Notes: generated by a model not told the origin, from the sequence alone. Shown: positions 41,716 through 64,000, numbered from the stretch's first letter. The stretch: DNA of 64,000 nucleotides from Nageia nagi (GCA_050084985.1 JBITNC010000001.1:3224001-3288000); one strand, 5' to 3'. Program-made: numbers and translations.

Positions 41716-41740
41716 TAGGGTTTAGGGTTTAGGGTTTAGG
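41716..41740 (+). repeat. Plant-type telomeric repeat tract TAGGG(TTTAGGG)2TTTAGG
   Basis: Read directly. The G-rich strand points toward the retroelement array. Confidence 0.9.
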
Positions 41741-42170
41741 TTTTTAAAAATTAGTTTATTAAAAATTAAGTTTTATAAAAATTCAAGTTTTATAAAAATT
41801 CAAGTTTTATAAAAATTCAAGTTTTATAAAAATTTAAGTTTTATAAAAATTCAAGTTTTATAAAAATTTTAAGTTTTATAAAATTAAGTTTTATAAAATT
41901 TTATAAAAATTTGTTTTATAAAAATTTAGTTTTATAAAAAATTAAGTTTTATAAAAATTTAAGTTTTATAAAAATTTAAGTTTTATAAAAATAGTTTAAA
42001 ATTGCTTTATAAAAATTTTGTTTTAAAAAATTTTAGTTTTATAAAAATTTTATAAAATTTTAATTTTATTATTAAGTTTTATAAAAATTTAAGTTTTAAA
42101 AAAATTTAAGTTTTATAAAAAATTTAGTTTTATAAAAATTAAAGTTTTATTAAATTTTTATAAAAATTTA
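41741..42170 (+). repeat. ~17-bp tandem repeat (AAGTTTTATAAAAATTT)n, about 25 imperfect copies
   Basis: Read directly. It runs seamlessly into TTATAAAAATTTACCAAATCAC of the first PLE unit. Confidence 0.95.
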
Positions 42171-42255
42171 CCAAATCACTGGCAGCTTACATTCAAACAA
42201 CGAGAGATAAATTTTAAAAAAATTACAATTTTTCAATTACAAATATCACAATCTA

Positions 42256-42295
42256 TGCAAAACTAGTTTCGGCTCTATAAACCTCATCAGTTGCA
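42256..42295 (-). ncRNA. Minimal type I hammerhead ribozyme (intact core)
   Basis: Minus strand TGCAA CTGATGA GGTTT ATA GAGCC GAAAC TA GTT TTGCA. Stem I is TGCAA/TTGCA, followed by CUGAUGA, stem II, GAAAC, palindromic stem III ACUAGU and a GUU cleavage triplet. Confidence 0.85.
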
Positions 42296-43011
42296 ATGTG
42301 AAAATTACATTGAAATCTATTCATAAAGAAAGAGAGGAGAATGAAATGGTTCTTCCAAAATAAGAAAAATGTTTCAACTTTAGCTCTCACAAAAGATAAA
42401 AATGAGGTACACCTTTCACCTTCAACTCTATCCAAGTGAGACCACTTCCAAAATTAGAGAAAATAAAAAAAAACCTATAAATCTTCCATTTTAAGGAAAA
42501 AATTTCAAATTAAAATTATAAAACATATAATGTATTAAAATATTTATGCTAAATAATTTTAAATAATTAATTTTTAAACTATAGAATAGTTAAAAAATTA
42601 TATAATATAATTATAAAATTATAAAATATAATTAAAAAACTATTCAAAATAGTTAATTAATTAAAATAATCTATGTTGAATAATCAACAAGATTATTAAA
42701 ATTAAAAATAATTAAAACTATATAAAACTATATTTAAAATATAGTAAAATATGATTAAAATTATTAAAGATAATAATTAATTCATTAATTTAAAATAATT
42801 TAAATTATTAAAATGGTTAAATTTATAACTATAGAAATAGCTAAAATTATGAAAAACTAATGATTATTTTCTTAAAAAGTTAAGATTTTAAAGATTGCAA
42901 TACAAAATATTGTAAAATTTAAAAAAATTAAAAATTTAATAATAATAATCGATACTAAACCATAATTTTTATAAAAATTAGAAAAATTAAGACTTAATAT
43001 GAAGTAATTAA

Positions 43012-45210
43012 TTATTTTTGAAATCTACTTTTTATCATAAAAGACCTTAGTGTTCTAGGGTTTCGCTAGCAAATTAGAGGAGAGAGGATGCATTTTAGAG
43101 CTGGAACTTGTTGGCATCACTTGTGGAGTTTAGGGTTTAGGGTGACCCCCAAGTTTAAGTCCTTTACAGAATAGCTAAAGTCAAGCTTGAAGATGAGGGG
43201 GCTTCATTTACTCACTCTTGAAACTCTTAGAGGAAGAGAGAGTAGCTTTGTTTTGTCTCTCCATGAGACTTTACTAAAACATTGAAGTAGAAATCGATTT
43301 GGATAGCCTCTTACCCATAGTCTAAGGAAAAAATTCTTTTTAATATGAACAAAACTAGAAGGATATGATTCTCTCAATAGATATCTCCTCACCTCATTGA
43401 GGATAAAAGATATTTTGTAATGCAATGGATGACATGATCAGCATGGAATATACTGATATGCATTGAGTGGTTTCTAGAAGCATCTAGTGGAGAGAATCCT
43501 TGAAGCGATAAAGTCTGCACCTTTCAAGAATGTAATATCCAGAATGTCCATGATAGTCTGAGAAATGAATGGACTGATCTTTATCTTTGGATAGACACCT
43601 TCGTACTATGCAAGGAAGTCCTTCAACGAATCCAAGGAGCTTGTCCAAATGCCAAACACATCATCCATAAAGTGTTTCAAGAATAGGAGATTAGCATCAT
43701 CAATTTTTTGCAATACTTAGCTTTCCAAATGATAAAAGAATATGCAGATGTAAATAATAGTGAAATTGGAATCCATTGTTGTACCTTTGATTTGTTTATA
43801 GATTTCCCCATCGAATTCTAGCTAATGTTCAATCAAAAGTAATTCTGCCAGACCCATGATGAGCTCAAGCCAAGAAGCATTGAGTTCATTATCCACGATG
43901 AAGGTAGCAAGAGTACTATGAAGTGTGAAAAGGCTAATAAAAATGGGAATACTAGGGTACAATGACTCCACATCGAATGTGAAAGGCAAATAATTGGGTG
44001 GAGCTCTTACAGCAAAAACTTCAGGCAAGAGAAAAATGGAATCAACCAAATGCATTTTCTACTTCAAGAGTACTGGAAGTAATAAGCAATGAAGGAATTT
44101 TGATGCAAGTTCTAGAATGTAGCTAGAGTAGGAGCAAATTGGTCTTCCTACCAAAATTGGCTTGTGAATTTTGGGTAATAGAAAAAATGCGCATCGACGA
44201 CCTTTAGAAGGAAGGTTCTTGAGCAAAAAATTCTTGATTGGTTTAAGGAATTCAAAGTTACCAATGAAGAAATTTAACTTATTCTAGATTATTTGCCATG
44301 GAACCATAAGCATTTTAATTTAGAATATAGCATCTGATAGTTATCTTAAGCCTTTAACAATATATCAAGATCTATCTAGGATGCAAAGGCCTAGATTCTT
44401 ATCTACAGGCTTTATGATGATGGTGGTGTCTTTGTGTAGCAGCTTTAAAATCTTAAGAATCCATCATGGGAGAGAGGGACCTTAGTAAAAGAGCATTTAA
44501 AAAATACCTCTTTAAACTCCCTTTCACTCTTCAGAATAATGGCTTTCAAATCATGGTTCATCTCAAGCAGATTCCACATGGATTTTGAAATTCTGAAAAG
44601 GAAATACATAGTAGAATGGAAGTAATTTGATCCTAGAAGTTTGGCTTGGAGTGAGCTCTCCTTTAGGACCAAAATATGCATGTAGTCAAAGCTTTTGAAA
44701 AAAAATTCTGAATTCAATGTGCATACATTCCATGGTCATGGGTGGTGGCCATAGGATGAACTTCAATCCTAATCCAAGAAGCTTCTTGTCATCATAGCTA
44801 AGTTGCCTGCAAGAGAGATTATGGATAGTAGGATTAGTAATACTTAAATCAATATTAGTAGGAGTTTTTCTTGAGAAAAGGAAGAGTACAAAAAGCTTAG
44901 GATCAGCCACCACACCCCAAAGGTTTATGTGGAAGTGGAGGCATTTGTAGCTAGCTATGCATTGTTGGCATTCTTTAGAAAATGATGGCCATTCTTTCCA
45001 TGCTTCGAGTTCTCTAGTGCATTAGTTGGATGATGTGATGGTTTCTTTGCATTTTGGGTTGTTGGATTGCTTACCTTTGAGCCACTAGGTTGCTTAGCAA
45101 ATGGGGCAAGCTTATTCCCCTTGCAAAAATTACATTTTTCCTTGGAGGGCAATGGTCTAGAGATAGCTGAAATGGAGTTTCGAGGAGTTCCAGAGGTAAC
45201 CCCATTTTTT
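43012..45210 (-). pseudogene. PLE reverse transcriptase ORF2, unit 1 (no endonuclease)
   Basis: LLGLGLKFI..PPP, IIKP.DKNLG, FLLPKIHKPILVGRPIC, FTFDVESLYPSIP, QIKGT.MGS, F(M/V)DDVFGIW, FLRLWVRGYP. Ends ...MIKSRFQK-TAA at 43012. The 5' boundary is inferred. Confidence 0.88.
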
Positions 45211-46586
45211 GGTTGAGCTTGGTTCTACTTCCTAATTGCTTAATTTTTATTTGTATTATTGGTCTTCTTTTCCTTCTTTGTAGGTGCAGGAGTAGAAGAA
45301 TGGATCCCAATAAATCAACAAATTTCATTGATCTCCTTCTACAATGTTTATTGTAGGGATTGGAAATTCTTGTGGATGAGTTGTGCGATAGAAGCATCGA
45401 TAGGCATTCAATCTAATTCATCTTGGGTAGTATCCCTTGCATTTTGACAAGCAATAGTAGCTTACTCTTTAGCACTCTTTTTCAATGAATGTTGAACCAT
45501 CCAACTATTGTAATGCTCTCCAAATGAGGCTATAGAAGCATTGAACCATTCAATGTGAGACGCTAAGAATGAATCAATGAATGGCTGAGCCTTTACTGCA
45601 TCAAGAGCTTGTTACTCTTGTAATGGTAGATCTATGATTGGCTAAAGCCTTATCCATTATAATGATAAAACCTTCAAAGAATGCCTTATTTTCTTCATGT
45701 TGAATGCCCTCTAAGTGAGTCAATAGGAGAGCATTTCCTTCCTCATCGTTAATGGTAACTTTGGGATCTTTTACCATCAAACACTTCGAAAGAGTACCAT
45801 CATCCTTATGTTTGTACAATTTATTGATGTACTCAATTGACTATTTAGCTTGGAAAGAGCATCATTTAAATTCCTTAAAGGATGCAGAGATGAGAAAAGT
45901 AATGGGCATAGGAAACTTCTCAGCGGCTAGAGGAGGCGATGTTCTAATGCTATGAGATGGATGATCCACCATATTGATGTTGCCATCAGCATCATGTAGA
46001 GGGGAGTGAGGTTATTATGACTTACTTTGGTTGTGAGGTTCTTATGGATCATGGGTGGAATCTAGTTGGGCAACGATGGTGGTTATCCTTGCATTTAGTT
46101 GGGCAGAGTCATAGTTTGCTAGGGAGTGGCAACAAGATGAGTAGCAACATTTTGAAGTGGTGCAGTGACATGTTGGGGAGTAGATGGTGCCATGGTGGAA
46201 GAGGAAAAGGAATGAATGGCATGTTGGAGCTGAACTACTAGCATTTCAAACCTATCCATGGTGTGCTCTTCCATTTTTTTACAATAGTCATTGAGAGTAT
46301 AAAACTACTGATCCTTTACATCATCAATCACATTTAGACACTCTATCAACTGGTGTAATGCGCATTCCAAGTTTGCAATGGTGGAGGTTGCATACCTGCC
46401 TTGTTGGGGGTTGTCACAAATTAGGAGGCATGCCTACCCTTCCAATGAATGTGGTGTGGCCGTCTCAGCTATCTTTATTCTTGATTGCTTACTTGGGGGG
46501 AGTGGATTTCTATGTTGATCGTCATGAGGAATAGAATTCCTAGACTCAATTCAAGAGATGATCTATTATTGTTGATTATTGGCCAT
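44925..46586 (-). pseudogene. PLE ORF1, unit 1 (~550 codons; helical/coiled-coil-like with basic C-terminal part)
   Basis: Conserved start ATGGCCAA(T/C)AATCAACAA (MANNQQ) ~125 nt after the hammerhead cleavage site. Conserved core HKDDGTLSKCLMVK.PKVTINDEEGNALL in every copy covering this region. Confidence 0.65.
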
Positions 46587-46708
46587 CGTGAAGAGAAGAT
46601 AAAATTTAAGTTTTATAAAAATTTACCAAATCACTAGCAGCTTACAATTCAAACAAGAGACAAATTTCAAAAAATTTACAATTTTGCAATTACAAATATC
46701 ACAATCTA

Positions 46709-46748
46709 TGCAAAACTTATTTTGGCTCTGTAAGGCTCATCAGTTGCA
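46709..46748 (-). ncRNA. Hammerhead ribozyme copy (GAAA mutated to AAAA)
   Basis: TGCAA CTGATGA GCCTTACAGAGCC AAAAT AAGTT TTGCA. Confidence 0.7.
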
Positions 46749-47426
46749 TTGTGAAAATTATATTAAAATCTGTTCATAAATAAGAGAGAAGAGTGAAACG
46801 ATTCTTTCAAAATGAGAAAAATGCTTCAACTTTAGCTCTCACAAAAGATGAAAATGAGGTACATCTTTCACCTTCAACTCCATCCAAGTGAAACCACTTC
46901 TAAAATTAGAGAAAGCAAAAAACTATAGATCTTTCATTTTAAGGAAAAGATTTCAAATTAAAATTATAAAACATATAATGTATTAAAACATTTATGTTAA
47001 ATAATTTTAAATAATTATTTTTTAAACTATAGAATAGTTAAAAAATTATATAATATAATTAAAAAACTATAAAATATAATTAAAAAACTATTCAAAATAA
47101 TTAATTAATTAAAATAATTTATGTTGAATAATCAACAAGATTATTAAAATTAAAAATAATTAAAACTATATTTAAAATATAGTAAAATATAGTTAAAATT
47201 ATTAAAGATAATAATTAATTCATTAATTTAAAATAATTTAAACTGTTAAAATGGTTAAATTTATAACTATAGAAATAGTTAAAATTATTAAAAACTAATG
47301 ATTATTTTTTTAAAAAGTTAAGATTTTAAAGATTGCAAAATTTACAAAATTTAATAATAATAATCAATACTAAACCATAATTTTTCTAAAAATTAGAAAA
47401 ATTAAGACTTAATATGAATTAATTAA

Positions 47427-49610
47427 TTATTTTTGAAATCTACTTTTTATCATGAAAGACCCTAGTTTTCTAGGGTTTTGCTAGCAAATCAGAGGAGAGG
47501 GGATGCATTTTAAAGCTAGAACTTGTTGGCATCACTTGTGGAGTTTAGGGTTTAGGTTGACCCCTAAGTTCAAGTCCTTTACAAAATAGCTAAAGTCAAG
47601 CTTGAAGATGAGGGGGGTTCATTTGCTCACTCTTGAAACTCTTAGAGGAAGAGAGAGCAGCTCTATTTTATCTTCCCATGAGAATTTGCTGAAACATTGA
47701 AGCAAAAATTGATTTGAATAGCCTCTTACCCATAATCTAAAGAAAAAATTCTTTTTGATATGAAGAAAACTAGAAGGATCTAATTCTCTTAGTAGATATC
47801 TCCTCAACTCATTGATGATAAAAGATCTTTACTGATGCAATGGATGCCACAATCGGTATGGAATATACTGGTATGCATTGAGTGGTTTCTGAAAGCATCT
47901 GGTGGAGAGAATCCTTGAAGTGATAAAGTCTACACCTTTGAAGAATGTAATATTTAGAATGTCCATGGTATTCTGAGAAATGCATGGAGTGATCTTTATC
48001 TCCAAATAGATGCCTTTGTACTATGCAAGGAAGTCCTTCAGCAAATCCTGGAAGCTTGTCCAAATGCCAAATGCATCATCCATAAAACATTTGAAGAATA
48101 TGAGATTAGCATCATTAATTTTTTGCAATACCTAGCTTTCTAGATGATAGAGGAATATGCAAGTGTAAATAATAGCAAAATTGGAACCCATTATTGTACC
48201 TCTAATTTATTTGTATATTTCCCCATTGAATTCTAGGTAATGTTCAATCAAAACCAATTCTACCAGACCCATGATGAGCTCAAGCCAAGAAGCATTAAGT
48301 TCATTATCTACGATGAAGGCAACAAGAGTACTACAAAGTGTGAAGAGGCTAGCAAAAATAGGAATACTGGGGTACAATGACTCCACATTGAATGTAAAAA
48401 GCAAACAATCAAATGGAGCTCTTATAGCAAAAACTTCGCACAAGAGGGAAATGGAATCAACAAAATGTGTTTTCTACTTCAGGAGTACAAGAAGTAATAA
48501 GTAATGAAGGAGTTTTGATGCAATTTTTAGAATGTAGCCAAAGTAGGAGCAAATTGGTCTTCCTACCAAAATTGGCTTGTGAATTTTGGGTAATAGAAAA
48601 AATGTGCATGGATGACGTTTAGAAGGAAGGTTCTTGAGTAAGAAATTCTTGATTGGTTTAAGGAATTCAAAGTTACCAATGAAGAAATTTAACTTGTTCT
48701 AGATTATGCTCCATGGAACCTTAGGCATTTTAATGTAGATTGCAGCATATAATAGTTGTCTTAAGCCTTCAGCAGTATACTAGGATCTGTCTAGGATGCA
48801 AAGGCTTAGATTTTATCTGCAAAATTTATGATGATGGTGGTGTCTTTGTGTAGCAGCTTTAAACTCTTAAGAAGCCATAATGGGAGAGAGGGGAGCTTGG
48901 TAAAAGAGCATTTAGAAAATGCCTCTTTAAACTCCCTTTCACCCTTTATAATAATGGCTTCCAAATCATGGTTCATCTCAAGTGAGTTCAACATAGATTT
49001 TGGAATTTTGAAAGGAAAGACACCATAGAATGGAAGTAATTCAATCCTAGATGTTTGGCTTGGATTGGGCTCTCCTTCAGAGCTAAAATATGCATGTAGT
49101 TAGACCTTTAGATAGAAAATTCTGAATTCAATGTGCATAGCTTCCATGGTCATGGGTGGTGGCTGCATGATGAACTTCAATCCTAGTCCAAGAAGCTTCT
49201 TGTCATCATAGTTGAGTTTCTTGCAAGAGAGATTGTGGATAGCAGGATTAGTTATCCTCAAATCAATATCAGTAGGAGTTTTTCTTGAGAAAAGGATGAG
49301 AGCAAAAAGCTTGGGATCGACCACCATGCCCAAGAGGTTTATGTGGAAGTAGGGGCATTTGCATATGGTTGTCATTATTGGCTTTCTTTTGAAAATGGTG
49401 GCCATTCTTTCCATGCTTTGAGTTCATTGGTGCATTGGTTTCTTTGCATTTTTGGTTGCTATATTGCTTCCCTTTGAGCCACCAAGTTGCCCAGTAGATG
49501 GGGTAGGATTCTTCCCCTTATGGGAATTACATTTTGCCTTGGAGGGAAACAATCCAGAGATAGCTAAAATGGAGTTCTAGGGAGGAATTCCAAAGGTAAC
49601 CCCATTTTTT
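47427..49610 (-). pseudogene. PLE RT ORF2, unit 2
   Basis: Same motifs as unit 1 (ORF fragments 47619, 48207, 48806, 49100). Confidence 0.88.
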
Positions 49611-51021
49611 GGTTGAGTTTGGTTCTACTTGCTAGTTGCTCAATTTTTCTTTGTATTGTTGGTCTTATTTTTCTTCTTTATAAATGTAGCAGTAGAAGAA
49701 TGGATCCTAGCAAATCTATGAATTTCATTGATCTCCTTCTGTAATGTTTGTTACAAAGATAAAAAATTCTTGTGGATGAGTTGTATGATAGAAGCATCGA
49801 TGGGCATTTGCTTCATCTTGGGTAGCATCTCTTACATCTTGACAAGTAGCAGTAGCTTGCTCTTTGGCACTTTTTTTTAATGAATGTTGAACCATCCAAT
49901 TATTGCAACACTCTCCAAATGAAGCTATAGTAGCATTAAACCATTCAATGTGTGGCATTGAAAATGAATCAATGAATGGTTGAGCCTTTACTACATCAAT
50001 AGCTTCTATCAAGATGGTTTTGAAGGAGCTTGTTACTATTGCAATGGTAGATCTATGATTGGTCAAAGCCTTTTCCATTGTAGTGATAAATCCTTCAAGG
50101 AATACTTTATTTACTGCACATTGAACACCCTCCAAGTGATTCGCTAGGAGAACATTTCCTTCCTCATTGTTAATGGTAACTTTGGGAGCTTTTACCATCA
50201 AACACTTTGAAAGAGTACCATCATCCTTATGTTTGCATAATTTATTGATGTACTCAATAGACCATTCAACCTACAAAGAGTATCATTTAAATTCCTCAAA
50301 AGATGTGGAGATGAGAGAAGTAATGGGCATAGGAAGCTTCTCAACAACTGGAGGAAGCAATGTTACAATGCTATGAGATGGATGATCCACCATCTCAATA
50401 TTGCCATCAACATCGCATAGAAGTGAGCAAGGTTCTTATGGCTTACTTTGGCTATGAGGTTCTTATGGGTCATAGGTGTAATCTGGTTGGGTGATGATGG
50501 TGGTTGTCCTTGCATTTAGCTGGTCAAAGGTGGTGGTCATCATCATAGTTTGCTAGGGAGCAGTGACATGATGAGTAGCAATGTTTTGAAGTGGTGTAGT
50601 GGTGTATTGGGGAGCAGATGGTGTTGTGGTGAAAGAGGAAAAGGAATGAATGGCATGCTAGAGCTAAAATGCTAGCATTTCAAACCTATCCATGGTGTGC
50701 TATTCCATTTTTTCATAGCAATCATCGAGAGTATAAAACTATTGATTCGTTGCATCGTCAATCACATTTAGATGCTTCATCAGCTAGTGTAACGCTCATT
50801 CCAAATTAGTGATGGTGGAGGTTTCATAGCCACCATGTTGGGGGTTGTCACAAATCATGAGGCATGCCTACCCTTCCAAAGAATGTGGTGTAGCCATCTT
50901 AGCTATCTCTGTTCTCGATCTTGCTTACTTGGAGGAGCAGATTTCTATGTTGATCACCATGAGGAATAGAGTTCCCAGAATCAGTTCGAGGGATGATCTG
51001 TTGTTGTTGATTATTGGCCAT
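49339..51021 (-). pseudogene. PLE ORF1, unit 2
   Basis: ORF fragments 49725-50201 and 50899-51108 (MANNQQQQIIPRTDSGNSIPHGDQHRN). Confidence 0.65.
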
Positions 51022-51146
51022 CATGAAGAGAAGATAAAATTTAAGTTTTATAAAAATTTTCCAAATCATTGGCAACTTACAATTCAAACAATGAGAGACA
51101 AATTTCAAAAAATTTGTAATTTTTCAATTACAAATATCACAATCTA

Positions 51147-51186
51147 TGCAAAATAAGTTTCAACTCTATAAGCCTCATCAGTTGGA
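51147..51186 (-). ncRNA. Hammerhead ribozyme copy (core kept, stems diverged)
   Basis: TCCAA CTGATGA GGCTTATAGAGTT GAAAC TTATT TTGCA. Confidence 0.7.
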
Positions 51187-51848
51187 TTATGAAAATTATA
51201 TTGAAATTTATTCATAAATAAGAGAGGAGAGTGAAACGATTCTTCCAAAATGAGAAAAATGCTTCGACTTCAACTCTCACAAAGGACGAAAATGAGGTAC
51301 ACCTTCAACTCCATCCAAGCGAAACCACTTCCAAAATTGGGGAAAACAAAAAAATTGTAGGTCTTCCATTTTAAGGAAAAGATTTCAAATTAAAATTTTA
51401 AAATATATAATGTATTAAAACATTTATATTAAATAATTTTAAAGAATTAATTTTTTAAACTATTGAATAATTAAAAAATTATATAATATAGTTAAAAACT
51501 ATAAAATATAATTAAAAAACTATTCAAAATAATTAATTAATTAAAATAATCTATGTTGAATAATCAACAAGATTATTAAAATTAAAAATAATTAAAACTA
51601 TATTTAAAATTATTAAAGATAATAATTAATTCATTAATTTAAAATAATTTAAACTATTAAAATAATTAAATTTATAACTATAGAAATAGTTAAAATTATT
51701 AAAAACTAATGATTTTTTTTAAAAAGTTAAGATTTTAAAGATTGCAATATAAAATATTGCAAAATTTAAAAAATTAACAATTTAATAATAATAATCGATA
51801 CTAAGCCATAATTTTTAAAAAAATTAAGACTTAATATGAATTAATTAA

Positions 51849-53496
51849 TTATTTTTGAAATCTTCTTTTTATCTTGAAAGACCTAGTTTTCTAAGATTTT
51901 GCCAACAAATCAAAAGAGGGGGGATGCATTTCAGAGTCAAAACTTGTTGGCATCAGCTGTGGAATTTAGGGTTTAGCATGACCTCCAAGTTCAAGTCCCT
52001 TACAGAAGAGCTAAAGTCAAGCTTGAAGATAAGGGGGTCCATTTGCTCACTCTTCGAACTCTTAGGGGAAGAGAGAGCAACTCTATTTTGTCTCCACATG
52101 AGACTTTCCTAAAACATTGAAGCAAAAATCTATTTGGATAGCCTCTTACCCACAATTTGAAGAAAAAATTCTTTTTAAGATGAAGAAAACTAGAAGGATC
52201 CGATTCTCTCAATAGATATGTCCTCAAGTCATTGATGGCAAAAGATCTTTTCTAATGCAGTGGATGCCACGATCGGTATGGAATATACTAGTATGTGTTG
52301 AGTGGTCTTTGGAAGCATCTAGTGGAGAGAATCCATGAAGCAGCAAAGTTTGCACCTTTGAAGAATGTAATATCCAAAATGTCCATGGTAGTCTGAGAAA
52401 TGCATGGAGTGATCTTTATCTTTGAATAGATGCCTTCCTACTATGCAAGGAAGTCCTTCAACAAATCCAGGGAGCTTGTCCAAATGCCAAACACATCATC
52501 CACAAAGCATTTGAAGAACAGGAGATTAGCATCATCAATTTTTTGCAATACCTGGCTTTCTAGATGATAAAGGAATATGCAACCATAAAAATAGTGAAAT
52601 TGGAACCCATTGCTATACCTATAGTTTTTTTGTAAATTTTCCCATCGAATTTTAGGTAATGTTTAGTCAAAACCAATTCTGCCAGACCCATGATGAGCTC
52701 AAGCCAAGAAGCATTGAGTTCATTATCCATGATGAAGGTAGCAAGAGTTCTATAAAGTGCAAAGAGGCTAGCATAAATAGGAATACTAGGGTATAATGAC
52801 TCCACATTGAATGTGAAAAGTAAATAATTCAGTGGAGCTCTTATAGCAAAAACTTTATGAAAGAGGGAAATGGAATTTTGGAAGGAAAGACACCATAGAA
52901 TGGAAGTAATTCAATCTTTGATGTTTGGCTTGGATTGGGCTCTCCTTCAGAACCAAAATATGCACATAGTCAGAGCTTTTGATAGAAAATTTTGAATTCA
53001 ATGTGCATAGCTTTCATGGTCATGGGTGGTGGTTGCATGATGAAAACCAATCCTAGTCCAAGAAGCTTCTTATCATCATAGCTAAGTTTCCTACAAGAGA
53101 GATTATGGATAGCAAGATTAGTGATCCTCAAATCAATGTCAATAGGAGTTTTTCTTGAGAAAAGGATGAGTGCAAAAAGCTTAGGATCAACCACCACACC
53201 CCAAAGGTTTATGCATAAGCAGGGGTGTTTGCAGATTGCTATGCATTACCAACTTCCTTCTAAAAATGGCAACCATTCTTTCCATGCTTTGAGTTCTCTG
53301 GTGCCTTGGTTGGATGATGTTGTGGTTTCTTTGCATTTTGGGTTATTATATTGCTTCCCTTTGAGCCACCAAGTTGCCCAGCATATTGGATAGGATTCTT
53401 CCCCTTGTAGAAATTACATTTTTCCTTAGAGGGAAATGGTCCAAAGATAGCTGAAATGGAGTTCCCGGGAGGAGTTTCAGAGGTAACCCTATTTTT
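51849..53496 (-). pseudogene. PLE RT ORF2, unit 3, with ~550-bp internal deletion
   Basis: The junction at ~52871 (GGGAAA-TGGAAT-TTTG) removes the ADK and PKIHK/GRPI motifs. Confidence 0.85.
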
Positions 53497-54905
53497 AGTT
53501 GAGTTTGGTTCTGCTTGCTAATTGTTGGTTTTTCTTTGTATTTTTGGTCTTCTTTTCTTCTTTATAGGTGTAGGAGCAGAAGAATGGATCCCAAAAAATC
53601 TATTAATTTCATTAATCTTCTTCTATAATGTTTATTTCAAGGATTTGAAATTCTTGTGGATGAGTTATGCGATAAAAGCATTGATGGGCATCCAATCTGC
53701 TTCATCTTAGGTAGCATCTCTTTCATCTTTATGAGCAGTAATAGCTTGCTCTTTGGCACTTTTTTTCAATTAATTTTGAACCATCCAATTGTTGCAATGC
53801 TCTCTAAATGAAGCTATAGTGGCAATGAACCATTCAATGTGAGGCACTGAGAATGAATCAATGAATGGCTAAGCCTTTACTGCATCAATAGCTTTTATCA
53901 AGATGGTTTTAAAGGAGCTTGTAACTGTTGCAATGGTAGATCTATGATTAGTCAAATCCTTCTCCATTGCAGTGATAAAGCCTTCAAGGAATGCCTTATT
54001 TGCCTCACATTGAACGCCCTCTAAGTGAGTCACCAATAGAGCATTTACTTCGTCATCATTAATGGTAACTTTGAGAGCTTTTACCATTGAACACTTTGAA
54101 AGAGTACCATCACCCTTATGTTTGAATAATTTATTGATGTACTCGATGGATTGTTCAACCTATAGAGAGCATCATTTAAATTCCTTAAAGGATGTGGAGA
54201 TGAGTGAAGTATTGGGCATAGGAAACTTCTTAGCAATTGGAGGAGGCAATGTTCTAGCATTATGAGATGGATGATCCACCATCTTGATGTTGCCATCAAC
54301 ATCGATAGAGGGGAGTGAGGTTCTTGTGGCTTGCTTTGGTTGTGAGGTTCTTATGGCTCATAGGTGAAATTTAGCTAGGTAATGGTGGTGGTTGTACTTG
54401 CATTTAGCTAGGTAGAGGTGGTGGTCATCATCGTAGTTTGCTAGGGAGTGGCAACATGATGAGTAGCAACATTTTGAAGTGGTGCAATGACATGTTGTGG
54501 AGTAGATGGTGCCATGGTGGAAGAGGAAAAGGAATGAATGGTATGTTGGAGCTGAACTACTAGCATTTCAAACCTATCCATGGTGTGCTCTTCCATTTTG
54601 TCATAGAATTCATCGAGAGTATAAAACTGCTGATCGATGCATCATTTAATCACATTTAGATGCTCTATCAACTGGTGTAATGCTCATTCCAAGTTAGGAT
54701 GGTGGAGGTTGTATACCCACCTTTTGGGGGTAGTCACAAATCACAAGGCATTCCTACCCTTCCAATGAATGTGGTGTGGCCATCTCATCTATCTCTATTC
54801 TTGATTGCTTACTTAGGGGGAGCAGATTTCTATGTTGATCACCATGAGGAATAGAGTTCCCAGGCTCAATTTAGGGATCATCTGTTGTTGTTGATTGTTG
54901 GCCAT
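53209..54905 (-). pseudogene. PLE ORF1, unit 3
   Basis: Homologous to other copies (ORF fragment 53869-54087). Confidence 0.65.
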
Positions 54906-54919
54906 CATGAAGAGAAGAT

Positions 54920-56918
54920 AAAATTTAAGTTTTATAACAATTTACCAAATCGCTAGTAGCTTGCAATTCAAACAATGAGAGATAAATTTCAAAAAATTTA
55001 TAATTTTTCAATTACAAATATCACAATCTATGCAAAACTAGTTTTGGCTCTGTAAGCTTATCAATTGCATTGTGAAAATTACATTGAAATCTATTCATAA
55101 ATAAAAGAAGAGAGTGAAATAGTTCTTCTAAAATGAGAAAAATGCTTCAACTTTAGCTTTCACAAAGGACAAAAATGAGGTGCACCTTTCACCTTCAACT
55201 CCATCCAAGTGAAACCACTTCCAAAATTAGGGAAAGCAAAAAACCTATAGGTCTTCCATTTTAAGTAAAAGATTTCAAATTAAAATTATAAAACATATAA
55301 TGTATTAAAACATTTATGTTAAATAATTTTAAATATTTAGATTTTAAACTATAAAATAGTTAAAAAATTATATAATATAGTTAAAAAACTATAAAATATA
55401 ATTAAAAAACTATTCAAAATAATTAATTAATTAAAATGATCTATGTTGGATAATCAACAAGATTATTAAAATTAAAAATAATTAAAACTATATAAAACTA
55501 TATTCAAAATATAGTTGCTCAGTTTTTCTTTATATTGTTGGTCTTGTTTTTCTTCTTTATAGGTGTAAGAGTAGAAGAATGGATCCTAACAAATCTATGA
55601 ATTTCATTGATCTTATTTTGCAATGTTTGTTACAAAGATTAGAAATTCTTATGGATGAGTTATACGATAGAAGCATCGACGAGCATGTAATCTGCTTCAT
55701 CTTGGGCAACATCTCTTACATCTTTATGAGTAGTAGTAGCTTGCTCTTTGGCGCTCTTTTTCAATGAATGTTAAACCATCCAATTATTGCAATGCTCTCC
55801 AAATGAAGCTATAGTAGCATTAAACTATTCAGTGTGCGGTACTGAGAATGAATCAATGAATGGTTGAGCCTTTACTACATCAATAGCTTCTATCTAGATG
55901 GTTTTGAAGGAGCTTGTTACTGTTGCAATGGTAGATCTATGATTGGCCAAAGCCTTCTCCATTACAGTGATAAAGCCTTCAAGGAATGCCTTATTTTCTT
56001 CACATTGAATGCCCTCCAAGTGATCGCTAGGAGAGCATTTCCTTCCTCATTGTTAATGGTAACTTTGGGAGCTTTTACCATCAAACACTTTGGAAGAGTA
56101 CCATCATCCTTATGTTTGCACAATTTATTGATGTACTCAATGGACCATTCAACTTACAAAGAGTATCATTTAAATTCCTCAAAGGATGTGGAGATGAGAC
56201 AAATAATGGGCATAGGATACTTCTCAGTAACTAGAGGAGGCAATGTTCTAGCGCTATGAGATGGATGATCCACCATCTCAATGTTGCCATCAACATTGCA
56301 TAGAGGGGAGAGACATTCTTATGGATTGATTTTGCTACAAGGTTCTTATGGCTCATAGGTGTAATCTGGTTGGGCAATTATGGTGGTTGTCCTTGCATTT
56401 AGCTAGTTAGAGGTGGTGGTCATCATCATAGTTTGCTAGGGAGCGGTGATATGATGAGCAACAATGTTTTGAAGTGGTGCAATGGTGTATTGGGGAGTAT
56501 ATGGTGTTGTGGTGGAAGAGGAAAAGGAATTAATGGCATGCTAGAGCTAAAATGCTAGCATTTCAAACCTATCCATGGTGTGCTATTACATTTTTTCAAA
56601 GCAATCATTGAGAGTATAAAACCATTGATTCGTTGCATCATCAATCACATTTAGATGCTCTATCAATTGGTGTAATGCTATTCCAAACTAGCGATAGTGG
56701 AGGTTTCATACTTGCCATGTTGGGGGTTATCACAAATCATGAGGCATGCCTACCCTTCTAAAGAATGTGGTGTGGCCATCTTAGCTATCTCTATTCTCGA
56801 TCTCCCTTACTTGGGGGGAGCAGATTTCTATGTTGATCACCATGAGGAATAGAGTTCCCAGAATCAGTTTGAGGGATGATCTATTGTTGTTGATTGTTGG
56901 CCATCATGAAGAGAAGAT
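54920..56918 (-). mobile_element. PLE unit 4, internally deleted (entire RT ORF lost; ORF1 5' part 55512-56904 kept)
   Basis: The AT-rich UTR joins ORF1 sequence at TAGTT (55512-55516). Confidence 0.85.
55031..55069 (-). ncRNA. Decayed hammerhead ribozyme copy
   Basis: TGCAA TTGATAA GCTTACAGAGCC AAAAC TAGTT TTGCA. The catalytic core is mutated. Confidence 0.6.
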
Positions 56919-57027
56919 AAAATTTAAGTTTTATAAAAATTTAGCAAATCATTGGCAACTTACAATTCAAATAATGAGATAAATTTCAAAAAATTTGCAA
57001 TTTTTCAATTACAAATATCACAATCTA

Positions 57028-57067
57028 TGCAAAATAAGTTTCAGCTCTATAAGCCTCATCAGTTGCA
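57028..57067 (-). ncRNA. Hammerhead ribozyme copy (core kept, stem III altered)
   Basis: TGCAA CTGATGA GGCTTATAGAGCT GAAAC TTATT TTGCA. Confidence 0.75.
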
Positions 57068-57701
57068 TTATGAAAATTATATTGAAATTTATTCATAAAT
57101 AAGAGAGGAGAGTGAAACGATTCTTCTAAAATGAGAAAAATGCTTCAACTTCAACTCTCACAAAGGACGAAAATGAGGTACACCTTTCACCTTCAACTCC
57201 ATCCAAGTGAAACCACTTCCAAAATTAGGGAAAACAAAAAAATTATAGGTCTTCCATTTTAAGGAAAAGATTTCAAATTAAAATTATAAAACATATAATG
57301 TATTAAAACATTTATATTAAATAATTTTAAAGAATTAATTTTTAAACTATTGAATAGTTAAAAATTATATAATATAGTTAAAAAACTATAAAATATAATT
57401 AAAAAACTATTCAAAATAATTAATTAATTAAAATAATATATGTTGAATAATCAACAAGATTATTAAAATTAAAAATAATTAAAACTATATAAAACTATAT
57501 TTAAAATATAGTAAAATATAGTTAAAATTATTGAAGATAATAATTAATTCATTAATTTAAAATAATTTAAACTATTAAAATAATTAAATTTATAACTATA
57601 GAAATAGTTAAAATTATTAAACAATTTAATAATAATAATCGATACTAAGCCATAATTTTTTAAAAAATTAGAAAAATTAAGACTTAATATGAATTAATTA
57701 A

Positions 57702-59346
57702 TTATTTTTGAAATCTTCTTTTTATCATGAAAGACCTAGTTTTCTAAGATTTTGCCAGTAAATTAGAAGAGGGGGGATGCATTTCAGAGTCAAAACTTGT
57801 TGGCATCACTTGTGGAATTTAGGGTTTAGCATGACCTCCAAGTTCAAGTCCCTTGTAGAAGAGCTAAAGTCAAGCTTGAAGATAAGGGGGTCCATTTTCT
57901 CACTCTTGGAACTCTTAGGGGAAGAGAGAGCAGCTCTATTTTGTCTCCACATGAGACTTTGCTAAAACATTGAAGCAGAAATCTATTTGGATAGCCTCTT
58001 ACCTATAGTTTGAAGAAAAAATTATTTTTGAGATGAAGAAAACTAGAAGGATCCGATTCTCTCAATAGATATGTCCTCAAGTCATTGATGGCAAAAGATA
58101 TTTTCTAATGCAGTGGATGCCATGATTGGTATGGAATATACTAGTATGTGTTGAGTGGTCTTTGGAAGCATCTAGTGGAGAGAATCCATGAAGCAGCAAA
58201 GTTTACACCTTTGAAGAATGTAATATCAAATGTCCATGGTAGTCTGAGAAATTCATGGAGTGATCTTTATCTTCGAATAGATGCCTTCCTACTATGAAAG
58301 GAAGTCCTTCAACAAATCCAGGAGCTTGTCCAAATGCCAAACACATCATCCACAAAGTGTTTAAAGAATCGGAGATTAGCATCATCAATTTTTTGCAATA
58401 CCTGGCTTTCTAGATGATAAAGGAATATGCAAGCATAAACAATAGTGAAATTGGAACCCATTGCTGTACCTATAGTTTTTTTGTATATTTTCCCATCAAA
58501 TTTTAGGTAATGTTTAGTCAAAACCAATTCTGCCAGACCCATGATGAGCTCAAGCCAAGAGGCATTGAGTTCATTATCCATGATTAAGGTAGCAAGAGTA
58601 CTATGAAGTGCAAAGAGGCTAGTAGAAATAGGAATACTAGGGTATAATGACTCCACATCAAATGTGAAAAGCAAACAATCCGATGGAGATCTTATAGCAA
58701 AAACTTCATGAAAGAGGAAATGTAATTTTGAAAGGAAAGACACCATAGAATGGAAGTAATTCAATCTTTGATGTTTGGCTTGGATTGGGCTCTCCTTCAA
58801 AACCAAAATATGCACATAGTTAGACCTTTTGATAGAAAATTTTGAATTCAATGTACATAGCTTCCATGGTCATGGGTGGTGGTTGCATGATGAAAACCAA
58901 TCCCAATCCAAGAAGCTTCTTATCATCATAGCTAAGTTTCCTGGAAGAGAGATTATGGATAGCAAGATTAGTGATCCTTAAATCAATATCAATAGGAGTT
59001 TTTCTTGAGAAAAGGATGAGTGCAAAAAGCTTAAGATCAGCCACCACACCCCAAAGGTTTATGCAGAAGTGGGGGTGTTTGTAGATTACTATGCATTGCT
59101 AGCTTTCTTCTAAAAATGGTGACCATTCTTTCCATGCTTCGAGTTCTCTAGTCCATTGGTTGGATGATGTAGTGGTTTCTTTGCATTTTGGGTTGTTGTA
59201 TTACATCCCTTTGAGCCACTAGGTTGCCCAGCATATGGGGTAGGCTTCTTCCCCTTATATAAATTGCATTTTTCCTTGGAGGGCAATGGTCCAAACATAG
59301 CTAAAATGGAGTTCCTAGGAGGAGTTTCGAAGGTAACCTATTTTTT
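57702..59346 (-). pseudogene. PLE RT ORF2, unit 5, with the same ~550-bp deletion as unit 3
   Basis: ORF 58309-58851 reads FTFDVESLYPSIP...GTAMGSNF...FKHFVDDVFGIW. Deletion junction at ~58721. Confidence 0.88.
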
Positions 59347-60757
59347 AGCTGAGTTTGGTTCTACTTGCTAATTGGTGGGTTTTTCTTTGTATTATTAGTC
59401 TTATTTTTCTTCTTTGTAGCTATAGGATCAGAAGAATGGATCCCAAAAAGTATATGAATTTCATTGATATCCTTTTGCAGTGTTTATTATAGGGATTGGA
59501 AATTCTTGTGGATGAGTTGTGCGATAAAAGCATTGATGGGATCCAATCTACTTGCTCTTGGGTAGCATCTCTTACATCTTGATGAGTAGCAATAGCTTGC
59601 TCTTTGGCACTCTTTTTCAATGAATTTTGAACCATCCAATTGTTGCAATGCTCTCCAAATGAAGTTATAGTAGTAATGAACCATTCAGTGTGAGGCATTG
59701 AGAATAAATCAATGAATGGCTAAGCCTTTACTACATCAATAGCTTTTCAAAAGATGGTTTTAAAAGAGCTTGTAACTGTTGCAATGGTAAATCTATGATT
59801 GGTCAAAGCCTTGTCCATTGTAGTGATAAAGCCTTCAAGGAATACCTTTTTTGCTTCACATTGAACACCCTCCAAGTGAGTCAACAATAGAGCATTTCCT
59901 TCCTCATCATTAATGGTAACTTTGGGAGCTTTTACCATCAAACACTTTGAAAGAGTACCATCATCCTTATGTTTGCACAATTTATTAATGTACTCAATGG
60001 ATTGTTCAACCTACAAAGAGCATCATTTAAATTCCTCAAAGCATGTGGAGATGAGTGAAGTATTGGGCATAGAAAACTTTTCAGCAATTGGAGGAGGAAG
60101 TGTTCTAGCGTTATAAGATGGATGATCCACCATCTCGATGTTGCCATCAACGTTGCACAGAGGGGTGCCACATTCTTATGGCTTACTTTGGTTGTGAGGT
60201 TCTTATGGATCCTAGGTGGAATTTAGCTGGGAAACAATGGTGGTTTTCCTTGCATTTAGCTAGGCAGAAGTGGTGGTCATCATCACAATTTGCTGAGGAG
60301 TGGCAACATGATGAGCAACAACATTTTGAAGTGGTGCAATGACATGTTGGGGAGTAGATGGTGATATGGTGGAAGAGGAAAAGGAATGAATGGCATGTTG
60401 TAGCTGAAATATGAGCATTTTCAACCTATCCATGGTGTGCTATTCCATTTTTCATAGTAGTCATCAAGAGTAAAAATTGTTGATCCATTGCATCATCAAT
60501 CACATTTAGAAGCTCTAATAACTGGTGAATGCTCATTTCAGGTTAGTAAAGGTGGAGGTTGCATACCTACCTTGTTGGGGGATGTCAAAAATCATGAGGC
60601 ATGCCTACCCTTCTAATGAATATGGTGTGGTCATCTCAGCTATCTCTATTCTTGATTGCTTACTTGGGGGAAGCGGATTTCTATGTTGATCACCATGAGG
60701 AATAGAGTTCCCAGACTCAATTCGAGGGATGATCTATTATTGTTGATTGTTGGCCAT
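59059..60757 (-). pseudogene. PLE ORF1, unit 5
   Basis: ORF fragments 59110, 59420 and 59747. Confidence 0.65.
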
Positions 60758-60882
60758 AGTGAAGAGAATATAAAATTTAAGTTTTATAAAAATTTACCAA
60801 ATCACTAGCAGCTTAAAATTCAAACAAAGAGAGACAAATTTCAAAAAAATTACAATTTTTCAATTACAAATATCACAATCTA

Positions 60883-60922
60883 TGCAAAACTAGTTTCAGC
60901 TCTGTAAGCCTCATCAATTGCA
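60883..60922 (-). ncRNA. Hammerhead ribozyme copy (C3-to-U variant)
   Basis: TGCAA TTGATGA GGCTTACAGAGCT GAAAC TAGTT TTGCA. Confidence 0.75.
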
Positions 60923-61600
60923 TTGTAAAAATTACATTGAAATCAATTCATAAATAAGAGAGGAGAGTGAAATTATTCTTCCAAAATAAGAAAAATGCTT
61001 CAACTTTAGCTCTCACAAAGGATGAAAATAAGGTGCACCTTTCACCTTCAACTCCATCCCAATGAAACCACTTCCAAAATTAGGGAAAGCAAAAAAACCT
61101 ATAGGTCTTCCATTTTTAAGGAAGAGATTTCAAATTAAAATTATAAAACATATAATGTATTAAAACATTTATGTTAAATAATTTTAAATAATTATTTTTT
61201 AAACTATAGAATAGTTAAAAAAATATATAATATAGTTTAAAAACTATAAAATAACTATTCAAAATAGTTAATTAATTAAAATAATCTATGTTGGATAATC
61301 AACAAGATTATTAAAATTAAAAATAATTAAAACTATATTTAAAATATAGTAAAATATAGTTAAAATTATTAAAGATAATAATTAATTAATTAATTTAAAA
61401 TAATTTAAACTAATAAAATGGTTAAATTTATAACTATAGAAATAGTTAAAATCATTAAAAACTAATGATTATTTTCTTAAAAAGTTAAGATTTTAAAGAT
61501 TGCAAAATTTACAAAATTAAAAATTTAATAATAATAATCGATACTAAACCATAATTTTTCTAAAAATTAGAAAAATTAAGACTTAATATGAATTAATTAA

Positions 61601-63776
61601 TTATTTTTGAAATCTACTTTTTATCATGAAATACCCTAGTTTTCTAGGGTTTTGCTAGCAAATCAGAGGAGAGGGGATACATTTTAAAGCCAGAACTTAT
61701 TGGCATCACTTGTGGAGTTAAGGGTTTAGGGTGACCCCCAAGTTCAATTCCTTTATAGAATAGCTAAAGTCAAGCTTAAATATGAGGGGGGTTCATTTGC
61801 TCACTCTTGAAACTCTTAGAGGAAGAGAGAGCAGCTCTATTTTGTCTCCCCATGAGAATTTGCTAAAACATTGAAGCAAAAATTGATTTGGATAGCCTCT
61901 TGCCCATAATCTAAAGAAAAAATTCTTTTTGAGATGAAAAAAACTAGAAGGATCTAATTCTCTTAGTAGATATCTCCTCAACTCATTGATGATATAAGAT
62001 CTTTTCTGATGCAATAATTGCCACGATCGATATGGAATATACTTGTATGCATTGAGTGGTTTCTGAAAGCATCTGGTGGAGAGAATCCTTGAAGCGATAA
62101 AGTATACACCTTTGAAGAATGTAATATTTACAATTTCCATGGTATTCTAAGAAATGCATGTAGTTATCTTTATCTCCAAATAGATGCCCTTGTACTATGT
62201 AAGGAAGTCCTTTAGTGAATCTAGGGAGCTTGTCCAAATGCCAAACGCATCACCCATAAAATATTTGAAGAATAGGAGATTAGCAATATCAATGTTTTGC
62301 AATACCTAGCTTTCTAGATGATAGAGGAATATGCAAGCATAAACAACAGTGAAATTGGAATCCATTACTGTACTTCTAATTTATTTGTAGATTTCCCCAT
62401 TGAATTCCAGGTAATGTTCAATGAAAACCAATTCTGCCAAACCCATGATGAGGCCAAGAAGCGTTAAGTTCATTATCTATGATGAAGGTAATAAGATTAC
62501 TATGAAGTGTGAAGAGGCTAGCAAAAATAGGAATATTGGGGTACAATGACTCCACATTGAATGTGAAAAGAAAATAATTGGATGGAGCTCTTATAGCAAA
62601 AACTTTGCACAAGAGGGAAATGGAATCAACCAAATGTGTTTTCTACTTTAGGAGTACAAGTAATAAGTAATGAAGGATTTTTTATGTAGGTTTTAGAATG
62701 TAGCTAGAGTAGGAGCAAATTGGTATTCCTACCAAAATTGGCTTGTGAATTTTGGGTAATAGAAAAAATGTGCATGGATGACCTTTAGAAGGAAGGTTCT
62801 TGAGCAAGAAATTCTTGATTGGTTTAAGGAATTCAAAGTTACCAATGAAGAAATTTAACTTGTTATAGATTATTCTCAATGGAACCTTAGGAATTTTAAT
62901 GTAGACTACAACATCTAATAGTTATCTTAAGCCTTTAGTAGTATACTAGGATCTATATAGGATGCAGAGGCCTACATTCTTATCTGCAAAATTTATGATG
63001 ATGGTGGTGTCTTTGTGTAGCAGCTTTAAACTCTTAAGAAGCCGTTATGGGAGAGAGGGGAGTTTGGTAAAAGAGCATTTAGAAAATACCTATTTAAACT
63101 CCCTTTCACTCTTTAGAATAATGGCTTCCAAATCATGGTTCATCTCAAGTGAATTCCACATGGATTTTGGAATTTTGAAAGGAAAGACACCATAGAATGG
63201 AAGTAATTCAATCCTAGATGTTGGCTTGGACTGGGCTCTCCTAAAGAACCAAAATATGCATGTAGTTAGAGCTTTAGATAGAAAATTTTGAATTCAATGT
63301 GCATAGCTTCCATGGTCATGGGTGGTGGCTACGTGATGAACTTCACTCCCAGTTCAAGAAGATTCTTGTCATCGTAGTTGAGTTTCTTGCAAGAAAAATT
63401 ATGGATAGCAGGATTAGTTATCCTCAAATCAATATCAGTAGGAGTTTTTCTTCAGCAAAGGATGAGAGAAAAAAGCTTGGGATTGGCCACCATTCCCAAG
63501 AGGTTCATGTGGAAGTAGGGGCATTTGCAAATGGTTATGCATTACTGGCTTTCTTTTGAAAATGGTGGCCATTCTTTCCATGCTTTGAATTCATTTGTGC
63601 ATTGCTTTGTTTGCATTTTTGGTTACTAGATTGCTTCCCTTTGAGCCACCAAGTTGCTTAACAGATGGGGTAGGCTTCTTACCCTTGCAAAAATTGCATT
63701 TTTCCTTAAACGGAAACAGTCCAGAGATAGATGAAATGGAGTTCTAGGGAGGAGTTTTGAGGTAACCCCATTTTTT
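61601..63776 (-). pseudogene. PLE RT ORF2, unit 6
   Basis: FFLLPKIHKPILVG, FNVESLYPNIP, QKPLNAY.YIPYRSW, FFRLWARGYP. Confidence 0.88.
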
Positions 63777-64000
63777 GGTTGAGTTTGGTTCTACTTGCTA
63801 GTTGCTCAATTTTTCTTTATATTGTTGGTCTTATTTTTCTTCTTTATAGGTGTAGGAGTAGAAGAATGGATCCTAACAAATTTATGAATTTCATTGATCT
63901 CCTTCTACAATGTTTGTTACAGAGATTGGAAAATCTTATGGATGAGTTGTGCGATAGAAGCATCGATAAGCATCTAATCTACTTCATCTTGGGCAGCATC

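Follow-up and report, generated by a model that had tools for sequence, protein, structure and literature searches.

What does a head-to-tail row of reverse transcriptase (RT) elements beside telomere repeats record: a chromosome end that was lengthened copy by copy, or something else? The question is raised by a 64,000-nt stretch of the Nageia nagi genome (GCA_050084985.1 JBITNC010000001.1:3224001-3288000), hereafter the window, in which a TTTAGGG tract precedes, on one and the same strand, the antisense of a tandem array of Penelope-like elements (PLEs) that appear to lack an endonuclease (EN). No mobile elements stand closer to telomerase than EN-less PLEs. An initial annotation of the locus had proposed a telomere-extending chain of additions by a family undescribed in seed plants. 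Judging by the sequences of the units, however, the array is one dead copy amplified as DNA, and we consider it probable that an EN-less PLE was joined to a TTTAGGG end, decayed, was then amplified as DNA, and today lies in the interior of its chromosome.

Layout and copying history of the array

The array follows a minisatellite, has a period of about 4.4 kb and runs head to tail, with the element antisense on the plus strand. Unit boundaries were taken from BLAST against unit u2. The features, with positions counted from the first letter of the window, are as follows; LTR stands for long terminal repeat, ORF for open reading frame, UTR for untranslated region and an asterisk for a stop.

41716-41744, plus strand (G-strand): telomere-type tract, (TTTAGGG) x4.1, called by Tandem Repeats Finder (TRF) as TAGGGTT x4.1; it abuts the 3′ end of the array
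41746-42158, minus strand: 17-mer minisatellite, sense TATAAAACTTAAATTTT, about 24 copies, 93% AT
42149-42919, minus strand: u0, terminal pseudo-LTR/non-coding tail only
42159-42260, minus strand: pseudo-LTR segment of about 100 nt, from the hammerhead cleavage site (between 42261 and 42260) to the 17-mer, conserved in all units
42256-42295, minus strand: minimal type-I hammerhead of u0 with intact core and palindromic helix III, TGCAA-CTGATGA-GGTT..AGCC-GAA-ACTAGT-T/TTGCA (slash, cleavage site)
42296-43018, minus strand: 3′ UTR of u1, 85% AT
42931-47341, minus strand: u1, full unit
43019-44913, minus strand: ORF2 (RT, about 630 codons) of u1, one frame with 21 in-frame stops, ending in ...SRFQK*
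43129-43142, minus strand: CCCTAAACCCTAAA in the C-terminal coding sequence of ORF2 (T-L-N-P-K) of u1
44914-46640, minus strand: decayed coding-like region upstream of ORF2 in u1, possibly ORF1
47346-51766, minus strand: u2, full unit, type F, ORF2 with 11 stops and 1 frameshift
51779-55501, minus strand: u3, type delta, with a 543-bp deletion that removes RT motifs 1-2
55512-57621, minus strand: u4, 5′ half only (unit coordinates 2288-4358), no RT
57623-61508, minus strand: u5, type delta, carrying the 543-bp deletion of u3
61520-64000, minus strand: u6, type F, cut by the window end, ORF2 with 17 stops and 2 frameshifts

The TRF tract and the minus-strand array bear out the initial description of a TTTAGGG tract followed by the antisense of head-to-tail RT elements. 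The same holds for the count of at least six elements, five of them with RT, since BLAST recovered five RT-bearing units (u1, u2, u3, u5 and u6) and the RT-less u4. All coding similarity in the array is on the minus strand. Read in the sense direction, the element consists of a hammerhead, a leader of about 100 nt, an upstream ORF, the RT ORF2, an AT-rich 3′ UTR and a second pseudo-LTR bearing a hammerhead. The tandem or partial-tandem organization with pseudo-LTRs by which PLEs are recognized is thus seen in the array of about 4.4-kb units, in their shared hammerhead segment and in the terminal u0. The UTR that follows ORF2 measures 83-85% AT rather than the approximately 90% first given.

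All units are pseudogenes, disrupted by 11-21 in-frame stops, by frameshifts or by deletions. Stops at codons 76, 117, 121, 130, 134, 139, 183, 285, 436 and 599 occur in every unit holding the respective codon, and at least nine premature stops are shared across units. Differences between units are spread evenly over the codon positions (p 0.2-0.9), with a transition/transversion ratio of about 3. The units u2, u4 and u6 are 90-95% identical to each other; u3 and u5 are 89-95% identical and share the 543-bp deletion; u1 has 83-91% identity with all others. A two-unit higher-order repeat results, composed of a full unit and a unit with the 543-bp deletion, in which u4 carries a deletion of 2.4 kb. 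Owing to the shared stops, the codon-neutral divergence and the higher-order repeat, the common ancestor of the units must already have been dead and the units copied as DNA. Based on these comparisons of the units, we conclude that amplification of one dead copy as DNA is shown.

This result bears directly on the chain of additions that had been proposed, namely at least six successive retrotranspositions that extended a chromosome end or a capped break and would represent a working telomere-extending system in a seed plant. Head-to-tail arrays of this polarity do resemble the chains formed by Athena, Terminon and Coprina elements (PMC6431247; PMC13159263), the array contains two structural variants, and each RT unit carries CCCTAAACCCTAAA. 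This motif is present in all five of them (besides u1, at 47544-47557, approx. 51960, approx. 57815 and 61718-31). However, TTTAGGGTTTAGGG of each RT unit occupies a fixed position of ORF2, where ACC CTA AAC CCT AAA encodes T-L-N-P-K, and because of this fixed coding position the telomere motif of the units is not a junction. Further, the junctions between units were uniform and contained neither telomere repeats nor a duplicated post-hammerhead leader. Together with the at least nine premature stops common to all units, the codon-position-neutral divergence and the two-unit repeat pattern, these findings largely refute successive additions, which we regard as most improbable.

The same layout could have arisen in one step, if the RT of another copy had, in trans and from a TTTAGGG 3′ end, reverse transcribed a long read-through multimeric RNA of a dead tandem source. 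In favor of this, insertion in tandem or partial tandem with pseudo-LTRs is typical of PLEs (PMC8557442), multimers would in part escape cutting if the hammerhead depends on dimers, and the terminal copy ends in a pseudo-LTR, as read-through RNA would. On the other hand, a cDNA of more than 22 kb would be required. The identities of 84-95% are, moreover, nested (u3/u5 closest, then u2/u4/u6, then u1), a pattern that fits stepwise duplication in place and does not fit a single event unless the source was already structured in this way. A one-step origin therefore appears quite improbable.

The reverse transcriptase and its lineage

To characterize the protein, ORF2 of u1 was translated unmended in a single frame, stops being written as X. 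This reading matches P0001, a protein from a Logan contig, with an E-value of 4e-155, and contains the PLE hallmarks IIIKPVDKNLG (the DKN motif), LPKIHKP, FTFDVESLYPSIP, GTxMxSNF and FMDDVFGIW, in addition to FDVESLYPSIP, an AMGS-type motif and xDD. P-A-D-K-N is invariant in a 12-sequence alignment of relatives. By these motifs, the protein is identified as a Penelope-like RT.

The end of ORF2 matters here, as it is there that EN+ PLEs read on into a Cys/His linker and a GIY-YIG nuclease. In all five RT units ORF2 is closed by the invariant ...AGATTTCAAAAATAA (...SRFQK*), as the initial annotation had stated. Residues 2-622 of the 626 residues of the Cryptomeria protein P0170, which ends in ...CWRNPRKLGSFLLRSRF, align to 44889-43021 with the same C-terminus. 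The C-terminus in the window reads ...TLNPKLHK*CQQVPALKCILSPLIC*RNPRTLRSFMIKSRFQK* and its Cryptomeria counterpart ...TLNPTLHRLCQEVPELQHISPPRVCWRNPRKLGSFLLRSRFLSRG. Judged by this alignment, ...SRFQK* is the true end of ORF2, and the stop at 'RVSK*', which precedes it in the sequence, is a decay stop. ORF2 thus stops about 30 codons past the conserved CW..NPR..L block, and EN-less relatives do likewise.

Searching 1.84 billion representatives with an open piece of 180 amino acids from u5 yielded 4261 relatives. The best of these (604-658 amino acids) are P0001, Ginkgo Gb_11119 and Selaginella XP_024523476, and a second search with P0001 added several proteins of Cryptomeria japonica, Closterium proteins and many unnamed metagenomic proteins. 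The relatives are nearly all about 600 amino acids long and show DUF8422, HTH_animal and a weak RVT_1; GIY-YIG (PF01541) was found in 1 of 120 among the matches listed. The nearest full-length relatives (580-626 amino acids) stop at the same residue block as ORF2 of the window. As a lead only, the nearest ESM-Atlas clusters comprise proteins of about 570-610 amino acids, commonest in Rotifera.

A direct search for the nuclease was equally negative. A GIY-YIG hidden Markov model (HMM) was built from the linker and GIY-YIG tails of five EN+ PLEs, confirmed by Pfam; its scores were negative throughout the six frames of 40000-64000, in line with the absence of an endonuclease noted at first. tblastn with the EN+ tails against the window returned noise only. 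The 272 homologues collected match the RT ORF2 and nothing else, apart from a weak N-terminal match of the Ginkgo protein upstream.

A tree was calculated from 181 RT cores with hmmalign and FastTree; named references for Athena, Coprina and TERT are not part of it, and Ginkgo Gb_11119 fell below the coverage filter. In this tree, u1 shares a clade of 8 rows with proteins of Cryptomeria (support 99), which is nested in a 38-row Selaginella clade (99) and then in a 53-row Closterium clade (98). All 16 EN+ proteins are separated from u1 by a branch with support 100. Given the negative HMM search, the homologue coverage and the RT tree, a Dryad with a deleted EN, a LINE (long interspersed nuclear element) and a permuted Chlamys-type element are excluded, and the initial assignment to an EN-less lineage is upheld. 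In particular, a Dryad or another EN+ PLE of the Penelope/Poseidon type was rejected for want of a C-terminal GIY-YIG domain and because the RT falls outside the EN+ clade. Chlamys, Naiad and PLE-X, permuted PLEs of the green lineage in which an N-terminal GIY-YIG and a CxC motif in the linker precede the RT, were rejected as there is no GIY-YIG in any frame; u2 has a CKC shortly before ORF2 begins, which the relatives from Cryptomeria, Selaginella, Closterium and metagenomes lack. A LINE was dismissed since the strong homologues are all of the PLE type (DUF8422, HTH_animal and weak RVT_1), no poly(A) is present and the 3′ end is a hammerhead-bearing repeat. Phylogenetic placement thus identifies the element as an EN-less PLE of a plant lineage that includes Selaginella and conifers, and indicates that the absence of the endonuclease is ancestral to this clade rather than a local loss.

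Upstream of ORF2, the coding-like region of about 1.7 kb starts at ATGATGGCC. Its equivalent in u2 (49220-51040) includes an open stretch of about 230 codons (49725-50201 and upstream). Weak similarity was detected to residues 18-93 of Ginkgo Gb_11119 (E-value 2e-4), and neither a Pfam match nor a zinc knuckle was found in the region. Pfam applied to single ORF pieces of the window gave nothing significant, the pieces being too short, and ORF1 of the metagenomic relative L011, which is proline-rich and of low complexity, did not help annotation either. The region is probably a decayed ORF1, and its presence suggests an element with two ORFs.

The telomere junction and the hammerhead

When the units are aligned in sense orientation, u0 matches the others through the hammerhead and a further 100 nt or so, up to the native 17-mer. 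In every internal unit the 17-mer is single-copy and precedes ATGATGGCC (ATGATGG), the start of the upstream ORF, by 12 nt. In u0 it is expanded about 24-fold, forming the minisatellite, and is followed by (CCCTAAA)4 in sense and then by the flank. As u0 matches the units only as far as the native 17-mer, it is the 3′ pseudo-LTR of u1 and not a truncated unit. The telomere tract abuts the end of this 3′ pseudo-LTR. Matches to (TTTAGGG)2 with at most one mismatch number 5 in the window, all on the plus strand, compared to 0.02 expected. G-strand first and antisense element next is the order that priming on a G-strand 3′ end should produce; the polarity of EN-deficient PLEs, claimed initially, is therefore present, at a single junction. 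Of the traits of EN-less PLEs, the 3′ end joined to telomeric repeats is seen at this one junction (41716-41744), and a chromosome-terminal location is lacking at this locus today: the assembled piece continues for at least 23.8 Mb past the right end of the window, the side expected to hold the chromosome end. Since it extends over 23 Mb in that direction, the locus is now interstitial.

The hammerhead is found in every unit at the same position, about 750 nt past the ORF2 stop, with the pattern TGCAA-CTGATGA-GGYT..AGCC-GAA-ACTAGT-T/TTGCA. Only the copy in u0 is intact; that in u4 (57028-57067) is nearly so, and the other units carry mutated versions. A strict descriptor gave exactly 2 matches in the window (u0 and u4), against a mean of 0.003 in simulated 64-kb sequences. 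We also sampled 80 metagenomic loci of relatives, and about 18 of them hold a sense-strand hammerhead within approximately 1.3 kb after the RT ORF; the same minimal form occurs in L001-L023 (metagenome contigs ERZ10344xx and Ga0213495). In 17 aligned sequences, 94.5% of the cells pair, compared to 29-41% in slid controls, and 7 of the 11 hammerhead pairs are compensatory, with both partners changed. The 6 nt of helix III are palindromic in every case, with a sequence that depends on the lineage (ACTAGT, ACCGGT, ACATGT or ATGCAT). Rfam, both at gathering thresholds and with E up to 1, gave no match. As minimum free energy folding was not significant (z -0.8), the claim is based on covariation and not on energy. 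Covariation argues that the hammerhead is the dimer-type minimal form, as in animal PLEs; for Selaginella PLEs, the canonical type-I form has been reported (PMC4209133). The bare pattern CTGANGA..GAAA is at chance level in the window (5 found, 6.7 expected), and a CTGATGA...GAAA match outside the array (31765-31799, minus strand) was discarded, being at chance level and devoid of hammerhead stems.

The sampled relatives provide context for the junction. Locus L003 has AAACCCTAAACCTAAAC 11 nt before the ATG of ORF1, and L010 has CTAAACCCTAAACC 9 nt before it. L033 is identical to L010 in this sequence but then continues into (CCCTAAA)x9 at the contig end (L033:6226-6302), while L035 begins with (CCCTAAA)x7 (L035:1-105); by their sequences, these two look like real telomere-adjacent copies from an organism with TTTAGGG telomeres. 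Over the 80 loci, 28 C-strand tracts in sense (in 11 loci) stand against 1 G-strand tract. The CCCTAAA-type repeats of relatives lie 170 to about 440 nt past the hammerhead. In the terminal copy of the window, (CCCTAAA)4 lies about 520 nt past it, and the internal units have only the AT-rich 17-mer at that place. According to the published model, G-rich overhangs are paired by C-rich repeats situated close to the hammerhead (PMC8557442; PMC6431247; PMC13159263), and the attachment point and polarity shared by the relatives fit this model. For the junction studied here, we infer pairing and priming of the same kind.

Some observations concern the 17-mer itself. It reads as two A/T-phased telomere-like heptads with a 3-nt spacer, and it is expanded solely in the copy beside the telomere tract. 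If C-to-T changes are allowed, it matches the 15-16-mer ACCCTAAACCCTTATA, present x8 in L033 (6022-6145), where this array sits between the hammerhead and the terminal (CCCTAAA)x9; we take the match as a lead only.

It is possible, if rather doubtful, that the locus was never a chromosome end. EN-less cDNA with C-rich terminal repeats of its own would then have been caught up in the repair of a double-strand break inside the chromosome, or its synthesis would have been primed at a telomere-like repeat in an interstitial position, and the four TTTAGGG units would be the tail of the element or a pre-existing interstitial repeat. The tract comprises only 4.1 repeats, the locus lies deep within a very long assembled piece, and relatives hold native CCCTAAA repeats at the pseudo-LTR end. 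However, the internal units have no CCCTAAA there but only the AT-rich 17-mer, and the polarity is exactly that of a G-overhang; capture at a break through the same pairing would, however, yield this polarity too. What separates this account from the one we prefer is solely the kind of free 3′ end involved.

The history that we consider probable has four steps. First, the 3′ pseudo-LTR end would have been joined to a G-rich TTTAGGG 3′ end, possibly that of a real chromosome end, possibly that of a break bearing a few telomere repeats; in known EN-less PLEs, a G-strand 3′ end pairs with C-rich, telomere-complementary RNA next to the hammerhead and is then extended by the RT (PMC8557442; PMC6431247). 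Second, the copy died, as its at least nine premature stops indicate. Third, the dead copy was amplified as DNA to a tandem array, for which unequal crossing-over of its two pseudo-LTRs offers the simplest route. Such crossing-over would yield uniform junctions and would leave the telomere-side version only in the outermost pseudo-LTR. Later, a block of one full and one 543-bp-deleted unit was duplicated again, and one unit lost 2.4 kb. Fourth, the locus as it appears in the assembly is interstitial and inert.

Several points weigh against this history. A single telomere junction is in view and its tract has only four repeats, which the element itself may have templated as its tail. Since the window closes before the right end of the array, a true end and a break are not separable. 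About 520 nt, mostly the 17-mer array, lie between the hammerhead and the telomere repeats, which are immediately adjacent in Terminons (PMC6431247). The stop at codon 599 possibly belongs to the family as such and would then be no sign of decay, and dead multimeric RNA might, with low probability, have been mobilized in trans.

The telomere complement within ORF2 invites a further thought. The DNA of this complement at T-L-N-P-K was found only in the window and in L001 (L001:2149-2162). As a peptide, T-L-N-P-K is present in the Cryptomeria, Selaginella and P0001 proteins; the remaining relatives show x-x-L-x-x-L-H in its place, encoded by non-telomeric codons. Plant EN-less PLEs might conceivably pair with G-rich 3′ ends at two sites, the pseudo-LTR end before the ATG of ORF1 and the ORF2-internal CCCTAAACCCTAAA, with the 17-mer array as the C-to-T-decayed footprint of reiterative telomerase-like initiation copying. 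We think this unlikely; if true, it would mean an old and still partly active system of end- or break-capping in gymnosperms.

The left flank is made up of older debris. Three pairs of direct repeats, spaced about 5-6.5 kb apart (4474/10997, 85%; 12005/17385, 87%; 20501/25487, 94%), were detected together with an ORF (12727-13359, minus strand) that encodes an integrase SH3 domain of the Tf2-1 type, and 4474-25786 represents decayed Ty3/gypsy-type LTR retrotransposons. No identifiable content was found in the 15 kb adjoining the telomere tract on the left.

Comparison with known systems

Whether such elements were already known from seed plants depends on the literature. A 2022 review includes Selaginella, Pinus taeda and Picea abies in its list of EN-less PLEs, citing Lin et al. 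2016 (PMC9033089). As two conifers are listed there, the family is already on record for seed plants, and the suggestion that it was undescribed in them does not hold. Selaginella is given in reviews as the sole plant example of telomere-associated PLEs (PMC12477314), and the genome literature equates conifer 'Penelope' elements with horizontally acquired EN+ Dryads (PMC10473749). For the EN-less PLEs of Pinus taeda and Picea abies, descriptions of junctions were not found in the literature covered.

Overall, our result is incremental. The locus adds a concrete junction between a 3′ pseudo-LTR and TTTAGGG in a seed plant, in the expected polarity, and evidence that this clade has a minimal hammerhead of the dimer type, the palindromic helix III of which covaries. 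The metagenomic relatives that end in what look like real telomere tracts are further new evidence. New in detail are the anatomy of the junction, the hammerhead type with its covariation, the telomere complement embedded in an ORF, and the proof of a DNA-amplified fossil, recognized as such by its shared stop codons and codon-neutral divergence. The case also advises caution, as a head-to-tail array beside a telomere repeat is, taken alone, no evidence of repeated telomere extension.

A close likeness is to the Coprina-type EN-less PLEs, listed for fungi, Selaginella (Sm1/Sm2) and diatoms, and to the EN-less PLEs of Pinus taeda and Picea abies (Gladyshev & Arkhipova 2007 and Lin et al. 2016, as summarized in PMC9033089 and PMC13159263). 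They share with our element an RT with DKN and thumb motifs of about 600-630 amino acids and without GIY-YIG, hammerhead-holding pseudo-LTRs as flanking direct repeats, and telomere repeats at the 3′ junction in the order G-strand to antisense; Selaginella proteins are the nearest named relatives outside seed plants. Unlike them, the copy in the window is interstitial, dead and amplified as DNA. Unlike that of Selaginella PLEs, its hammerhead is minimal with a palindromic helix III and not canonical type-I (PMC4209133). While Coprina usually has a single ORF, about 1.7 kb of coding-like sequence lies upstream here and suggests two.

Athena and the Terminons resemble the element in their EN-less PLE RT, head-to-tail arrays and two or more ORFs, according to the account of Arkhipova et al. 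2017 given in PMC6431247. As described there, Terminons also bear reverse-complement telomeric repeats downstream of the hammerhead at the 3′ end. Their C-rich repeats, however, come right after the hammerhead, whereas here about 100 nt and a 410-nt minisatellite intervene, and they reach up to 40 kb compared to 4.4 kb (PMC6431247). Terminon chains, as far as that account goes, are independent insertions capped by telomere repeats, in contrast to the DNA-level amplification of one dead copy in the window. Dryads, by published summaries, carry a C-terminal GIY-YIG, belong to the Penelope/Poseidon clade and came from arthropods by horizontal transfer (Lin et al. 2016; PMC8557442; PMC10473749). 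They have in common with our element a Penelope-like RT in a gymnosperm-type genome, but the window has no GIY-YIG in any frame and its RT stands apart from all 16 EN+ proteins of the tree.

In its architecture, the array also resembles tandem arrays of LTR elements, with the form (repeat-internal)n-repeat, uniform junctions, a higher-order repeat and shared inactivating mutations. Such arrays share terminal repeats and form by unequal crossing-over. In contrast to them, the terminal repeats in the Nageia array are PLE pseudo-LTRs and not true LTRs.

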